Below are positions 3,862 to 56,708 of a DNA stretch of 64,000 bases, in pieces; position 1 is the stretch's first letter; each line of letters starts with the position of its first letter. Under the pieces are notes generated by a model that searched no databases, was not told the DNA's origin, and saw nothing but the letters and a program-made list of their open reading frames with translations. Source of the DNA: Euprymna scolopes (lineage: Eukaryota); assembly GCA_053919585.1 (NCBI GenBank), contig CM132783.1. One strand, written 5' to 3'. Both the position numbers and the translations under genes were made by a program.

Positions 3862-3991
3862 TCTTTTCAGATTTCAAACTCAAATAACAACACATCTAAC
3901 GTATCAATATTTGATTCTGACTAACCATTTCAGCTTTTTTCCTTCCATCATATGTTTTGTGATAATAAAATGTCATTGGCTTCAGTTTGTT

Positions 3992-4201
3992 CCTAATTAC
4001 TTGCTTCCCCACGAGGGCCGAGTTAGATACAAGGTCGGTTGTTAATGCGGGGAAAATCCAGCTCCCCAAAAAGGGGCACTCTGAATAGAAACAAAAAGTT
4101 CTAAAATGTCTCAGTCATGAGGATTTCTCCTCCACCAATCAAGGACAGGAAAGGTGAAGTGTAGAATCAGAACAGATACTACACTGCGATCTTGGCCCGA
4201 A
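3992..4201 (-). mobile_element. U2 snRNA-headed SINE-like element, copy 1, with 14-bp TSD
   Basis: Minus head gccttcgggccaagatcgcagtgtagtatctgttct aligns to U2 nt ~12-46. Flanked by ggcttcagtttgtt at 3978-3991 and 4202-4215. Homologous copies at 27300 and 56524. Confidence 0.8.
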
Positions 4202-4488
4202 GGCTTCAGTTTGTTTAAGAATTTTTATTTCAGTTACAAATAATGTACGGGAGACAAATCTTTGCCTGTTAAAATATAATTTACAATATTTGATACATTA
4301 TTCAATATATCTTCCGTTCTTCTGTTTAATATTTTATGGCTACTTCAACTGTTTCTATATTTTTTCCATTTATTATGCATCATTATTTCGCTTTGTTTCA
4401 CACCTTTTTGACCATTTTACTTTTAATCTAAATTTATTTTGAAATGTATAATAAATGAATCCCAACTAACGTCGAGTATAGACAGCTA

Positions 4489-6300: not shown

Positions 6301-6960
6301 GCCAAGCAACAAAACAAAATATACATCTATTTTAATAATAACTTCTGCAAATTTTTATTTCTTGTTTCATAACAGAATTCGCTGAACGATATCAACGAAA
6401 ACAAACAGCGCATTTTATTTTGTGAAAATTGTTTTTATCAGCAGCATGTCAACAATAAGCTGTTTTTTATTATCTTTCTTGCGATACAACATCATTAAAA
6501 ACTGTTGACAATGAGAAGCAGGAGTGTTCAACACTTCCGTCTCCTTGCATTGTTAATCTATTTTTATTGGTTGAATCCCTGGAGAGTCTGTGAACGATGT
6601 TAGAAATAACAGCGCGTGTATGCATCCAAGAACGTGATAACATTAACTCGATTTTTTTTATTGTACAATACACCTCAAAATATGGCGATAATTATTTCTT
6701 AACTTGAAAGAATTTTTGCATTCTTTTACACGATAAGAAAATGTCTACGTTTTTATCTATTTGTTGCTGAGAGATTTTAGCTACAATAGAGATTTTGTGT
6801 CGATATGTTTGTAAATATTGTAACGTTGTAAGCTTCAAATTCCTCGTCGCCAGTATTATAGCTTTATATAGCTACAACAGCCAGTAATAATCAAGACAAA
6901 CACAATGGCATAGTTAACAAAAAGGTGTACTAGTAAATACGGAATAATTCATATTGATAG

Positions 6961-7058
6961 ACTGGTTCCCGTTAGATCATCAAAGTTAAGCAACGTTGAG
7001 CTTGGTTAGTACTGAAGTGGGTGACCATTTGGGAAGTCCAGGTCATGTATGTGCTCTC
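6961..7058 (+). mobile_element. 5S rRNA-derived SINE (SINE3) family A, head only, abutting a LINE tail
   Basis: ggttcccgttagatc..aagttaagcaacgttgag..gttagtact..tgggtgacc..tgggaa matches 5S. It continues into tgtatgtgctctc, as in the copies at 14085, 33751 and 45660. Confidence 0.85.
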
Positions 7059-14084: not shown

Positions 14085-14386
14085 ATAACTACTCCATACT
14101 TCCGTTCAGTCTTGAAAGACAAAGGATACCCCTTAGGAGCAGTAGCTCGTGTAATTGTGAGGCAAGGGTTGCACAATTCACAACCACACTGCTCCTGAAT
14201 CGGCACGGTTTGAGTCCAGTGGCAAGGAGAACACCAGGATGACTGAAAACAACGCCGAGATAAACAGAGAGCACATACAGCACCTGGAAGTTCCAAATGG
14301 GCACCCATTTAGCACTGTCCAGGTTCAACATTGCTTAACTTCAGTGATCCAGCAGGAACCGGTGTGTCAACGTGATTATGCCGTAT
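14085..14386 (-). mobile_element. 5S rRNA-derived SINE3 family A, full length
   Basis: 5S head (acggcataatcacgttgacacaccggttc..gaagttaagcaa..aatgggtgccc), then a non-5S body ending aagactgaacggaagta that is shared with 33751. Confidence 0.88.
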
Positions 14387-14494
14387 ATCTCTATTAGTTC
14401 TAGCTGAACTAATCAAACAGATAAGTACTGACCACCACATTCAATACTATTGATATTAGCATAATCCTCTACAAGATCTTAATACTCTTTTGCA

Positions 14495-27299: not shown

Positions 27300-27512
27300 T
27301 TTATTTACTTGCCTCCCCACGAGGGCAGAGTTAGACACAAGGTTAGTTTTCAATGTCAGAAAACCCAGCTCCTCAAAAAGGGTCACTCTGGATCGAAGCA
27401 AAAATAAAAATTGTCTCAGTCAAGAAGGATTTCTTCTCCACTGATCGAGGGCAGAAAAAGTGAAGTGTAGTATCAGACAGATACTACACCTTGTTCCCAG
27501 CTGAAAGGCTAA
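27300..27512 (-). mobile_element. U2 snRNA-headed SINE-like element, copy 2
   Basis: Collinear with 3992-4201. Head gcctttcagctgggaacaaggtgtagtatctgt-ct; tail accttgtgtctaactctgccctcgtggggaggcaagtaaataaa. Confidence 0.8.
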
Positions 27513-29024
27513 GCTGCAGTACGGAATCACTAACTGGGTGCCCTGTGATTGAATGAAAAATGACCAATTACAGGCTTCCTCTTTTTAGAGTTTCAGCAAA
27601 CCCTAGAAAAGCGAGTTTTACAAACGCCATTCCTCTTTTGCTCATGCGAACTCCCAGCGTCAACACGTTCTCGTCTGTTCTCTCCGTCATCTAAACACCA
27701 GAACACGTTTATAGTTTTCATACAGCAACTGCAGCACCCAACTCAAGGCTCTATTTCTTCAACCCAGTCAAAAGGACACAAGAAATATAAAACTGTTAAA
27801 CGGACTGTTTGCAAGCACCTTTCTTTTTTTTTTCCAGATTTTCTGTGTAAATACAATTTTCATAACATTTACAACTGTGTTGTGTTTCTTTCTTATTGCT
27901 AGTATCACTATATTTTGTTACCAAATATAATTGGGAAAAATCACAAAAAATTTGCAAACAACCATTTTACACTAAGAAAGTTAAAACCATGTGAAATAAT
28001 TTAACACGAAATTGATTGGTGTAAATAGTGTCGTTTGAGGAACGGGCATACGGACCCATTTTGATCTTTAATATATATATTTACTAGATTTGTGGAGATT
28101 TCGTTCATCCTTTTTGTTTTTGATTTGTTTGTGTATGTATTCGCTCAGAAAAATGAATGATTATAAGCAGATAAAGGGGGTGATAGCCTTACTTTTTTTT
28201 ATAGGGATTCGTTTAAAAGGAAAATTACTTCTGCCTTAAAATTAATCTCAGCAGAAGCATCCTTAAATGATACTGGTTTTAAAAAACAAGTTTTATAAAT
28301 AGATGGTTGATGGAGGTCGACACAATGAAAACAAAAAAATATGTGAAGTTTGTGAAAAGGCCGATATTAATTTAGAAAAGAGCATTATGTTGGAAGACGA
28401 ACAGTGAGAAGCAGAGTTCGTTTACAACATATTAAAAAGGCTCACAGGACTGGAAGAGAATATTTCTAGTTCCAATAATGAATTCGTCCAAGTGAAAATC
28501 CACAAGTGCCTCTCGCAGCCTTGTGCGTTTCAATCCCACAGTAGCGGTGTGTTTAATTCAGTGGGATACAAACTGGTAAATTTCAATTTAAACATGTTCT
28601 GGTTCAATTTGAAATCTGTGTGGACACTGTACACTGGAAAAAACAAAACAAAAAAAACAAAACAAACGTCCCAGTTAGATTTTAATCTTTCGTTAGAAGA
28701 TGAAAACTTTGAAGTGGCCATCAATATATTGAAAAAGGATTTTTTGGATATTAGTCTCATTATTGACGAAATTCTTAGCAATTGCTAGGCACCAGCCGTA
28801 AATATAACTCGGAGTTTATTAAAACAAAAAGTTTTTGTCAAAAATTAAAGTTAATCTATCCGGATTAAAAACTGTATAAGTTGATATTTTTACAACAAAC
28901 ATGCAAGGCTCTGAACTAATTAGCCATATAATATTTTTCAAAATTATCCCCAACTCTTTAAAAAGAATTAATTCGTATAAAGTTGAGAATAACTACCCGA
29001 AGATCAATTAGAGTTTTGATTTTG

Positions 29025-39963: not shown

Positions 39964-40084
39964 TCCCCATAATGATGACAACAACAAAATAAGCTTCACT
40001 AGTTTACATACTTGCTATTTAAACATATTACAAGAATTTTAGATCATCATTTCTGCTGACATAAAAAAAAGAAGAAAAAAAAAG

Positions 40085-40327
40085 GCACAATCACGTTTAC
40101 ACACCGGTTCTCATCAGATCACCGAAGTTAAGCAACGTTGCGCCTGGCCAGTACCAGATGAGTGACCATTTGGGAAGGCTAGGTGTTGTATGTACCTTCT
40201 GAGAAGTTTGGGTGTGGAGCCAGCACTCTCACCCCGAAAAAAGAACTCGTTACAAAAGCATCTACAAAATTTGTGGATGGCCTATGCCCTTCCAGAGGCT
40301 CAAGGCTACGGATTGGATGAATGGATA
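40085..40327 (+). mobile_element. 5S rRNA-derived SINE3 family B with RTE-like body and tail, 13-bp TSD
   Basis: 5S head, then ggagccagcactctcaccccgaaaaa..gttac, gtggatggcctatgccc and a (tgga)n tail. aagaaaaaaaaag at 40072-40084 and 40328-40340. Confidence 0.85.
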
Positions 40328-45659: not shown

Positions 45660-45853
45660 TCTCCTGAATCGGCACTGCTTGAGCACAGTGATAAAAAGTC
45701 TAGGACGACTGGAAACATTGCCGACATAAGCAGAGAGCACATAGTACACCTGGACTTACCAAATCGTTACCCATTTTAGTACTGACCAGGCTCAATGTTG
45801 CTTAACTTAAGGGATCCAACAGGAACCGGTGTACTAACGTGATTATGCCGTAT
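45660..45853 (-). mobile_element. 5S rRNA-derived SINE3 family A, 3'-truncated
   Basis: Collinear with 14190-14386. Confidence 0.85.
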
Positions 45854-45884
45854 ATTCTCAGAATACAATTGCAAATTACTTACA

Positions 45885-53806: not shown

Positions 53807-54264
53807 CTCGACTGATGAACTATTACTTCTATTAATGTATTATTGCACTATTTTTCAATGCTCGATTCAGGGGTATAATGCAACATCTCATCTGTTATGA
53901 AACCATCCTCCAGGCACTACCTCCTCCTTTATGGAGAAGTGTATCATATGTTCATTCATCATGAGACCATTCTCCCAACAATTACTTCCTTTTTGGGGGG
54001 AGAATGATATCTATCTTGTGGTCATGATACTATTCTCCTGTGTATTACCTCTTTCTTTTAGGTAGGGGTGGAGGTAGTGTAATATATTTTGTCATATCAT
54101 TTGCACAGGCATTACCTCCTCCTATTTGTAATATTGTACTATCTTTTAATACTCAATTCTGGGGGAGTTGGGTAATGTAGTATCTGTTCTGTTGTCAGAA
54201 GATCATCCACCCGGGCATTACTTCCACCTATGAAAGGTAGTGCACTATCGGTTTTGAGTCATTG

Positions 54265-54666
54265 TAGACTAGAGGATCAAATAAATACTTTTAAAAAGGT
54301 GATTTTTAGGGCTATTTGGGTACGGTATGAACGAACATCAAGGTTAAATTTGTTGCCCACAAGCAATTTTTATGATGTTAAGTCCTCCACATTTCCATGT
54401 TTTATCTAATATTTTAAAGTGGCCGCCATTTTATTTTATTGTTACATAAGACACTTGAGGCATACGCCCAGCAATACAAAACCCTCCTCTTTCCAAGTGA
54501 AAAATGGCGAGCAGTGAAAACAAAGAATATATTTCATAATGAAGGTGTTAATATCAAAATAATTTCTTGCTGGTGAAAAATGTAACTGTGATTCGCTCAT
54601 ACCAGATCCAAATACCCCTAGAAATCAACTTTTTCATAATGAATCTTCATTTGGTCCTCTAGGTCA
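54265..54666. mobile_element. ~400-bp MITE with ~55-bp diverged TIRs
   Basis: ctagaggatcaaat..aaaaggtgatttttagggctatttgg versus ccaaatacccctagaaatcaacttttt..atttggtcctctag. cattg on both flanks is a candidate TSD. Confidence 0.7.
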
Positions 54667-54951
54667 CATTGACCCTGTACTGTTGTGATGATACCATTTT
54701 GCCATGCATTACCTCCTCGTTTATTGGAAGAAGGATAAATGTAGTATATGCTTGTTCATCCTGATGCCATCCTCACATCTTCCTCATTTTGAGAGGGCAG
54801 GCTTGTAGTATATGTTCATTCATCATGATATCATCCTTCCAGGGATTAGCTCCACCTTTTAGGAGAATATAGTGTAGTATCTGTTTTGTAGTCATCATAG
54901 TATCCTCCCAGTCATTACTTTCACCTTTGGGAAGGAATAGTGTACCATTTG

Positions 54952-56006
54952 CACAATCACGTTGACACACCGGTTCTCATCAGATCACTGAAGTAATGTT
55001 GAGCTTAGCCAGTATCAGATGGGTGACAATTTGGGGAGGCGAGGCCCTGTGTGTGTAATGTGGGCTGTCATCATAGCATAGTATCTGTGTTAGCTGTGGC
55101 AAGCAGGGCCAAAACATTATTACTACTATTATTATTAATTGATTCGAGCGACGGCATGTCGCTGCATCAATTATTATTAGAAAAATAAACAATTAGATTG
55201 GGGAAAGTGATTGACAGCTGAAATAATAATATTGCTAAAAGGAATGTGAAAACAGAAAATAGATGTAAACATGATATTGATTTGCATAAACAAATAACTA
55301 GATTGAGGTTACATCAGCTGTTGGTTTGAGACACGTAATGAGATGTAGATTTGGAGAGATTCTAGTCAGTCATTAGCTGGACATCAGAGAGAACGGACAA
55401 CTCAAAGGGGGGGGTCTCTCTATGACGCGGGGAGCGGCGTTATCTCAGGCAGCCAAGATGTAAAAACGTTGTAATCTTTGAAGATGTCAGATGAAATCAT
55501 GAAAATAAATGTTCTTAAATAATTCAGGTATGTGTTGTGTTATTAACATCTGTTAAAAAGAACTGTTTGTCTATAACTGTTTCGATACGTAAATTGTTTC
55601 CCGTTAGATCTGTTGCATAAATGTTAAACTATACACACTACGCATTTACACGTACATGAATACACAGAAAACGATAAACACCACTATTCAACATGTACGT
55701 TGTTATAGAACATATTCATATACACATCACATAACAGACCCCTTTTTGGTGCCATAATATAACATATGTACCATGAGGTAAAATACCAGGTTGAGAAACT
55801 GGCGTGGTCTATCCTTCTCTCGAAGGTAGATTGGACTCTCCTAAGCTGTGGTAGGCATCCAGTCTAGTGAGGGCGTCAGGATAAAAAATACCCTTGTTAT
55901 ACCCCGGTGAAGCATCAAGTATTCAGCTACCAACAAGATTTGAATTAAACTACAAAACTCGGATAGTGAGTTCAATCTCGGCTATGGGCGCACTGGATGG
56001 TCGATG
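54952..56006 (+). mobile_element. 5S rRNA-derived SINE3 family C, split by a solo LTR
   Basis: 5S head at 54952-55053; body resumes at 55765 (tatgtacc); gatgg tail. TSD gtaccatttg (54942-54951) / gtactatttg (56007-56016). Confidence 0.75.
55054..55764. mobile_element. Solo LTR with 4-bp TSD
   Basis: TGTAAT...ATAACA termini with flanks tgtg/tatg. Removing it restores the SINE junction tgtatgtacc seen at ~40187. Confidence 0.7.
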
Positions 56007-56523
56007 GTACTATTTGTTCTGTTATCATGAGGCTATCTTCTCCAGCCTAATCTCTTCCTTGGGGCAGTCAAGAAAAAAAATCATAATGCCTAACACAACA
56101 CTTGCATTATATATACACTAGTAAAAAAGATAAATATTCTGCTGCAAAAAAAAATTAAAAAACTATAGAGGAGGAGAAAGAGATGTTTACGATAATCTCA
56201 TACAAATAACTCATTCTCAGGAAGTCAAGGTTTGTGAGCTAAATTGATGCATTAATAATTCAAAATTGCTTTTATTACATTATCCATGTTCGGCTTTATG
56301 AAAGAAAGTTCAGCTCTTTTTCCCCTTTTCACTCACACACACAATTTGTGTTGTTGCAAAGTGAGGCCTGATTTATGCAGCCGTGAATAACACAAACGGA
56401 AACGAGGTTCAAGAATAGTTATTCTAACTGGTAAAAACATACACATGTATCTAATATCTTATATATGAAATACGATTTTCTTCTGTTGTTTTACGGCATA
56501 TCAATCCTATTTTGAATCCATGG

Positions 56524-56708
56524 TAACTTTCCCACGAGGGTAAACAGACACAAGGTCGTTTTTTTTTATGGGCAAACTGGATTGCGGCAAAACAAGTTTC
56601 TTGATTCTAGAAGGATTTCTTCTCTACTGAACGGGGATGGAGCAGATGAAGTGTAATATCAGAACATACATTATACTATGATCCTAGTCAAAAAACCAAA
56701 AAAGTGTA
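56524..56708 (-). mobile_element. U2 snRNA-headed SINE-like element, copy 3 (old)
   Basis: Collinear with copies 1 and 2. The head aligns back to about U2 nt 3, with mostly C>T and G>A changes. Confidence 0.65.

Follow-up and report, generated by a model that had tools for sequence, protein, structure and literature searches.

Short interspersed elements (SINEs) with a 5' part, or head, derived from a small nuclear RNA (snRNA) have been described from crocodilians under the name SINEU, and their discoverer found none elsewhere (Kojima 2015, PMC4494074). A SINEU is recognized as a short (<500 bp), non-coding retroposon with target-site duplications (TSDs), a head from U1 or U2 snRNA and a 3' poly-A tail. 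It occurs in many copies of one shared structure, lacks an internal RNA polymerase III (pol III) promoter, contains oligo-T runs, and is linked to Tx1-Mar mobilization and Mariner-N4_AMi targets. We describe here a repeat of about 215-220 bp with a head from U2 snRNA, found in a stretch of 64,000 nucleotides of contig CM132783.1 of the mollusc Euprymna scolopes (assembly GCA_053919585.1). This whole stretch is called the window below. The repeat belongs to a new, independently born family of the SINEU type. In the literature that we searched, a scope that left Repbase and Dfam entries outside, SINEU was crocodilian only, and there was no snRNA-headed SINE from a cephalopod or any other mollusc.

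The family resembles SINEU-1, and especially SINEU-1J, in that a short U2-derived 5' piece is joined to a 3' part that does not come from an snRNA (PMC4494074). Both have thousands of copies with one structure, internal oligo-T runs and no recognizable promoter. In both, a long interspersed element (LINE) with the shared tail has not been found, the 5' end lies off U2 +1, and tandem insertions occur. SINEU-3 also has the 5' end of U2 at its head and is short and multi-copy, but it consists mostly of U2 (32 + 83 nt), whereas only nt 8-50 are detectably U2 in the present family. From all described SINEU the family differs in host phylum (mollusc, not crocodilian), in the absence of poly-A (it ends ...AATAGG(AACA), whereas SINEU-1 has a poly-A tail), in its AACA-led targets (Mariner-N4_AMi for SINEU-1) and in a 12-bp hairpin that masks the branch-point sequence. 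It also differs from SINEU-1 in that the U2 of the host itself, with an extra A, supplied its head, and in having at least 23,000 copies against about 7,700.

Three other systems are to be compared. Chimeras of the U6/L1 type are made by a jump of reverse transcriptase from one RNA onto an snRNA, which is also the likely birth mechanism here; those chimeras are one-off products with individual junctions, whereas here a single chimera seems to have become an amplified source gene. The Ceph-SINEs (SepiaSINE, Sepioth-SINE and OegopSINE; Akasaki 2010; Kojima 2018, PMC5786205) live in the same host group and also lack poly-A, but they carry tRNA heads and the Ceph/CORE domain. Neither the Ceph domain CCTTGGGAAAG nor the RTE-like sequence CCTCCAGCTATGGGTTAAATAGT is present in our consensus. 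The RTE-like 23-mer has 1,353 matches in the genome, but in the window it had none when up to 3 mismatches were allowed. Finally, the conserved U2 stretch GUAGUAUCUGUUCU is also the one that Keno and Utopia involve (PMC4640811). These retrotransposons insert into U2 genes at nt 38/39, with U2 on both flanks, whereas the present copies are dispersed in non-U2 DNA and carry the U2 part inside the element. Their 3' flanks are unrelated TSDs, and the U2 array units do not contain the SINE body. Keno and Utopia had been mentioned in an earlier note on this DNA; a link to them was not borne out, since the copies lie outside U2 genes, in unrelated AT-rich DNA with AACA-led TSDs.

The copies in the window and their U2-derived head

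The window contains three minus-strand copies of the repeat, and their alignment agreed with the earlier note on this point. The features of these copies are as follows.

3992-4204 (element certain to 4201), minus strand: copy 1, subfamily B, 87% identical to the consensus over positions 5-220
4202-4215, minus strand: 5' TSD of copy 1, AACAAACTGAAGCC, 14 bp, identical to the 3' TSD
3978-3991, minus strand: 3' TSD of copy 1, AACAAACTGAAGCC, 14 bp, identical to the 5' TSD
4166-4204, minus strand: U2-derived head of copy 1, about native U2 nt 11-50; it includes stem-loop I and GUAGUA, the sequence that recognizes the branch point
4157-4186, minus strand: hairpin at the junction in copy 1, in which the first non-U2 bases of the body pair with the branch-point region of U2; the loop UGUUCU is U2 nt 42-47
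27300-27513, minus strand: copy 2, subfamily A, full length, 89.7% identical to the consensus
27472-27513, minus strand: U2-derived head of copy 2
about 56531-56699, minus strand: copy 3, of an older and shorter subfamily, about 80% identical to the consensus in the aligned parts

The body of copy 1 runs to ...GTAATTAGG at 3992, and the bases GCC at 4202-4204 may be assigned either to the element or to the TSD. The perfect 14-bp TSD on both sides of this copy and the exact 17-mer of U2 within it (AGTGTAGTATCTGTTCT), both of which had been claimed before, were found. Copy 1 shows the marks of subfamily B, that is, GGCC-UUCG-GGCC in stem-loop I and GATCxCAG. Copy 2 had no recognizable TSD in the flank comparison. 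The subfamily of copy 3 is without about 35 nt of the body (consensus positions about 120-152).

For the comparison with U2, a consensus was built from 30 genomic copies. Native U2 was located with a pattern for U2 nt 32-67 and then scored against the Rfam U2 model (RF00004); one native unit scored 161 bits. The pattern had 1,187 matches genome-wide, most of them in a long head-to-tail array of host U2 genes with a period of 764 bp (contig 9, 168.86-168.97 Mb). The host U2 reads GAUCAAAGUG. It carries the same extra A as the repeats, and the extra base before GTGTAG that had been noticed in the three copies is thus common to the repeat and the host U2 gene.

The first 43 nt of the consensus were identical to native U2 nt 8-50 at 39 of 43 positions without a gap. 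The Smith-Waterman score of the head was 66, against 16.7 +/- 2.2 in 1,000 shuffles (z about 22), and blastn of the head with U2 gave E = 2e-11 in a search against about 330 kb of extracted genome DNA. The Rfam model gave 30.3 bits (E 3.7e-5) for the head alone of a full-length copy and 35.5 bits (E 6.9e-6) for a whole full-length copy, and copy 1 of the window scored 13 bits. The U2 gathering threshold, which applies to the whole model, is 46 bits, and no match in the window reaches it. Scores below this threshold are to be expected for the head and for the whole copy, with only a quarter of the U2 molecule present. The derivation of the head from U2 that had been proposed therefore stood, with significant Rfam matches for the head and the whole copy (E 4e-5 to 7e-6), but the proposed range of nt 3/12-46 was wrong, and the actual range is native U2 nt 8-50.

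The ancestral U2 states are divided among subfamily A, subfamily B and intermediates (A24/G24, T27/A27, A30/C30). Subfamily A retains CUUUUGGCU and CAAAG, with AGGAAC changed; subfamily B retains AAGAUC, with the UUCG loop and CACAG changed; and some copies retain GAUCAAAG or GGCUAAGA. Since the changes fall at different positions in each subfamily, their common ancestor must have had the sequence of U2 itself. Such a mixture of retained states is what descent from U2 would predict and what convergence would not. The extra A in the head points to a birth independent of the crocodilian families. Thus, the independent origin suggested earlier agrees both with a head taken from the host's own U2 and with the differing ancestral states kept by the subfamilies.

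Family size, ends and insertion sites

A 28-mer spanning the junction of U2 and body had 22,915 matches with up to 3 mismatches in the 5.9-Gb genome, while the reversed control had 0. These matches bear out the claim of a high-copy, SINE-like retroposon with a U2 head, and they show many copies of one shared structure, as in SINEU. A 28-mer from the tail had 13,357 matches genome-wide. The true copy number is probably several-fold above 22,915, because among the three window copies only copy 1 would pass the junction filter. Mean identity to the consensus was 87% in a biased sample of 76 copies. The diagnostic substitutions of the subfamilies are spread across head and body together, and it seems that a single founder chimera was amplified, rather than that the same accident was repeated. 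At least eight organism labels were represented among the sequencing runs with words of the family, and one RNA run labelled 'mollusc metagenome' had them as well. We infer that the family is old, consists of several subfamilies and is common to several related species.

Full-length copies begin with (C)TTGGCC, that is, at U2 nt 8-9, directly beside the TSD, whereas the 5' ends of truncated copies are scattered within the first 30 nt and beyond. At the other end, the copies inspected read ...GCCCTCGTGGGGAGGCAAGTAAATAGG without an A-run. The tail forms a small stem-loop with the terminus ...GUAAAUAGG(AACA), and in place of the poly-A tail of SINEU the TSD follows ...GTAAATAGG at once. Of 38 full-length copies, 12 had flank repeats beyond the 95th percentile set by controls with mismatched flanks, where about 2 are expected by chance; a length of about 215-220 bp together with these TSDs is in line with SINEU. 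In 11 copies the TSD starts with AACA right after ...AATAGG, and TSD lengths are 7-23 bp. These values, with the start at U2 nt 8-9, make up the tally of 5' ends and TSDs that the earlier note had proposed. AACA is also present in the 5' copy of the TSD, and therefore it belongs to the target. In one case a copy was inserted directly behind the tail of another, and such tandem re-use has been described by Kojima for SINEU-3 (PMC4494074).

The targets are unrelated AT-rich sites with an AACA-led TSD, not the Mariner-N4_AMi sites connected with Tx1-Mar mobilization. In the standard model of target-primed reverse transcription, a nick in the bottom strand would leave ...TGTT-3'OH, which could pair with AACA at the 3' end of the RNA. 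A tail that lacks poly-A and has a conserved stem-loop suggests a LINE that recognizes its own 3' end. New copies would then be made by target-primed reverse transcription through a LINE that recognizes this specific tail, a mode called 'stringent'.

We searched the genome with a pattern that excluded the SINE body, consisting of the exact tail core with non-SINE bases at seven upstream body positions. Almost all of the 46 matches were internally deleted or randomly 5'-truncated copies of the SINE, and they had no upstream non-SINE sequence in common. A low-stringency blastn search of the consensus against the extracted genome DNA found only SINE copies and U2 genes. In a separate search of the whole genome for RVT_1 there were 271,567 first-look candidates. 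The matches listed were mostly long, intact ORFs. Among the top ones, dozens have the same score and fall within intact frames of 1,323 aa or 1,051 aa, which points to at least two very young retroelement families.

Several copies were found within larger repeated structures. Three 5'-truncated copies on C1 (at 2.27, 25.74 and 37.29 Mb; loci L047, L053 and L055) have identical flanks on both sides, and therefore the SINE copy there is carried inside a larger repeat or duplication. A copy at L085:999-1568, 93% identical to the consensus, is interrupted between consensus positions 200 and 188-220, where about 340 bp of other sequence, probably a later insertion, lie. At L041:2175-9998 (C2:148122174-148129997) there is a satellite in which a 71-bp unit is repeated in tandem about 110 times at 94% identity. 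Each unit consists of the last approximately 60 nt of the SINE, including the tail stem-loop, and about 11 other bases. Here the tail of a SINE has been multiplied to form a satellite. At L041:1-614 there are 2.7 tandem units of 230 bp, each consisting of a short-subfamily copy with the same deletion as copy 3 of the window and a T-rich flank.

Folding of the element RNA

The fold of a full-length copy had a minimum free energy with z = -4.5 against shuffles. Stem-loop I of U2 is kept, and both subfamilies have an uninterrupted helix of 7 bp, which subfamily A attains through C10U and A24G and subfamily B through U22C and a UUCG loop. The 5' end of the element is the exact base of this helix. 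Directly after stem-loop I there is a hairpin at the junction, in which U2 nt 30-41 (AAGUGUAGUAUC) and the 12 nt that open the body are perfectly paired. The AAGUGUAGUAUC arm includes the branch-point recognition sequence, and U2 nt 42-47 form the loop. A perfect stem of 12 bp across the junction arose in only 1 of 200,000 shuffles of the body (p about 5e-6). Where the subfamilies differ by A or G in the 3' arm, a U-A pair becomes U-G, and pairing is preserved.

This hairpin may have arisen by selection on the source RNAs, by fold-back during cDNA synthesis, or by capture of an intermolecular duplex between U2 and another RNA at the template switch. A more specific form of the last idea, which we regard as speculative and rather unlikely, is that the hairpin is the fossil of an intermolecular duplex, in which the 5' end of the progenitor RNA (GAUACUACACUU) was paired, in the manner of a perfect branch site, with the branch-point region of U2. 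Reverse transcriptase would have run onto the tethered U2 and left nt 42-47 as the loop, and the source genes would be RNA polymerase II (pol II) units that need the stabilized stem-loop I and the masked branch-point sequence for the stability of their RNA. If this is true, the family records a retrotransposition event on a U2-bound RNA, and it would be the first tractable system for studying how snRNA-headed SINEs are transcribed.

The same stretch of U2 occurs in a second kind of repeat. In the window at 53900-56100 (for example 54173-54232 and 54801-54929) there are degenerate units of about 65-69 bp with TGTAGTATCTGTTCT, the branch-point region of U2, and these units lie outside any SINE copy.

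Origin and transcription of the family

We think it probable that the family is a non-autonomous retroposon of the SINEU type and of the non-LTR (long terminal repeat) class, with a head of U2 nt 8-50 and a fixed junction to a non-U2 body, descended from a single founder chimera, mobilized by a LINE and transcribed by pol II or by read-through. Most likely, the reverse transcriptase of a LINE finished the progenitor RNA and then jumped onto U2 snRNA. For the source copies, pol II transcription or read-through that starts at promoters in the flanks is the probable route, rather than a start at U2 +1. When contig depth was summed along the element, three RNA libraries gave 0.3-1.1 times the value of a DNA run, while neighbouring repeats had 0.03-0.27; the RNA/DNA depth ratio of the family was 2-10 times that of its neighbours. 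Contig word depth is a poor measure of this, and true U2 snRNA can inflate the bin of the head. Many RNA contigs extend from the 5' end of the element into diverse flanks, and oligo-dT and poly-A RNA runs contain words of the family. This support for pol II or read-through transcription is weak but consistent.

The earlier note had suggested that a master copy is transcribed from a captured U2 promoter. Such a master would lie inside or behind a U2 gene, whose external promoter would drive its transcription by pol II; as a variant, the progenitor would be a U2-targeting LINE like Keno or Utopia, with a transcript that also took in the upstream part of its target. The position of the junction is in accord with this, in that the end of the head, at U2 nt 47-50, is about 10 nt beyond the insertion point of Keno and Utopia at nt 38/39 (PMC4640811), and just this 5' flank would be expected on an element inserted in U2 with a TSD of about 10 bp. 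U2 genes are also abundant and tandem, as described above, and transcription from flanks occurs in copies of SINEU-2 (PMC4494074). However, the RNA of such a master should start at U2 +1. The sequence ATCGCTT (U2 nt 1-7) is joined to the family junction at only 1 place in 5.9 Gb, and this single match is a chance tetramer ATCG before the normal CTTGGC start. In addition, the TSDs directly adjoin U2 nt 8-11, the U2 array units are without the SINE body in blastn, and the insertions are at AACA in unrelated DNA, not at the U2 site. The captured promoter was thus not borne out, and we consider this explanation quite unlikely.

A second possibility, which we consider very unlikely, is that U2 gave rise to the whole element, as a degenerate retro-copy with internal deletions and a short foreign tail, like SINEU-3 or monomeric Alu, so that the body would come from stem-loop IIb, the Sm site and the terminal stem-loop. 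The Rfam model does align the full copy end to end, with the gain over the head alone given above, and this alignment sets AUUUUUG on the Sm site and the hairpin of the body on stem-loop IV; the best local match of the body is on stem-loop IIb (CCTCG..TGGAGG). But the extra 5 bits are within reach of any hairpin-rich, T-rich sequence. The body alone had no match to the model at E <= 10, and it was no more similar to U2 nt 51-199 than shuffled sequences were (a local score of 14, with 15.6 +/- 2.1 for the shuffles, and a semiglobal z of 0.55 to 1.25). From these comparisons, the derivation from U2 is confined to the head. As for an Sm-like site, AUUUUUG-like strings occur in the T-rich body, and we rejected this candidate, its support for homology not being beyond chance.

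The family might also be a pol III SINE of the ordinary kind, with a cryptic promoter inside its body, to which the U2 piece was added later as a 5' leader. The body sequence TCGATCAGTGG matches the A-box consensus of tRNA, TRGCNNAGTGG, at 9 of 11 positions, and repeated 5' addition of snRNA pieces to existing SINEs has been documented for SINEU-1 (PMC4494074). Yet runs of T4-5 are present at consensus positions 8, 57, 105, 111, 136 and 152, and these six runs, including two of T5 in the middle of the element, would terminate pol III. A B box spaced as in tRNA is missing, and Rfam E-value scans of the copies found no similarity to tRNA, 5S or 7SL, whereas a tRNA- or 5S-headed SINE (SINE2 or SINE3) would have a head related to tRNA or 5S rRNA, with A/B or A/IE/C boxes. 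The T-runs and the lack of such similarity make transcription by pol III unlikely, an argument that Kojima also made from T-runs for SINEU (PMC4494074), and the absence of an internal pol III promoter together with internal oligo-T runs agrees with that type. Furthermore, the tail-pattern search gave no headless or other-headed family with the same tail. We therefore regard this explanation as highly improbable.

Independent chimeric retro-copies, made by repeated template switching from LINE RNA to U2 as in the human U6/L1 chimeras, are refuted by the fixed junction and have a next to negligible probability: template switching onto snRNAs is a known side reaction of LINEs (literature summarized in PMC4494074), but 22,915 copies share the junction 28-mer and the 5' start, the diagnostic substitutions cross head and body together, and the tail-pattern search found no abundant LINE carrying the tail.

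Some points weigh against our preferred reading of a LINE-mobilized SINEU-type family from one founder. A LINE with this tail was not found, the 46 matches of the tail pattern being as described, and both the partner and its 'stringent' recognition are deduced only from the absent poly-A and the conserved tail. The template-switch birth and the transcription by pol II or read-through are likewise what we infer. The RNA contigs mean 'present in RNA' only, and give no evidence on discrete transcripts, their direction or their 5' ends. The sample of about 76 copies was chosen by similarity to the window copies and by exact motifs, so that the divergence and 5'-end tallies are biased. In addition, the family may already be catalogued in Repbase or Dfam.

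The window also contains four sequences similar to 5S rRNA (RF00001, 39-63 bits for all four).

6935-7053, plus strand: 5S rRNA-like sequence
40078-40194, plus strand: 5S rRNA-like sequence
14272-14388, minus strand: 5S rRNA-like sequence
45738-45855, minus strand: 5S rRNA-like sequence

The bodies that follow them differ from one another, and none shares the body or the tail of the U2-headed family. They are probably 5S-headed elements of the SINE3 type or retro-copies of 5S rRNA.

Recent genome papers on cuttlefish and bobtail squid reported 'almost no SINEs' (PMC13218726, PMC8967140), and families with unconventional heads have probably been filed there as unclassified repeats. With a total of about 5 Mb, the present family changes the SINE share of the genome little. 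Its meaning lies in the head. A second independent family, three times as abundant as the first and in a mollusc, indicates that the 5' domain of U2 can be recruited repeatedly as the head of a SINE, though it has no internal promoter. The family thus sharpens the question of how snRNA-headed SINEs are transcribed, and it does so in a host for which chromosome-scale genomes and plentiful RNA data are at hand to address SINE transcription.
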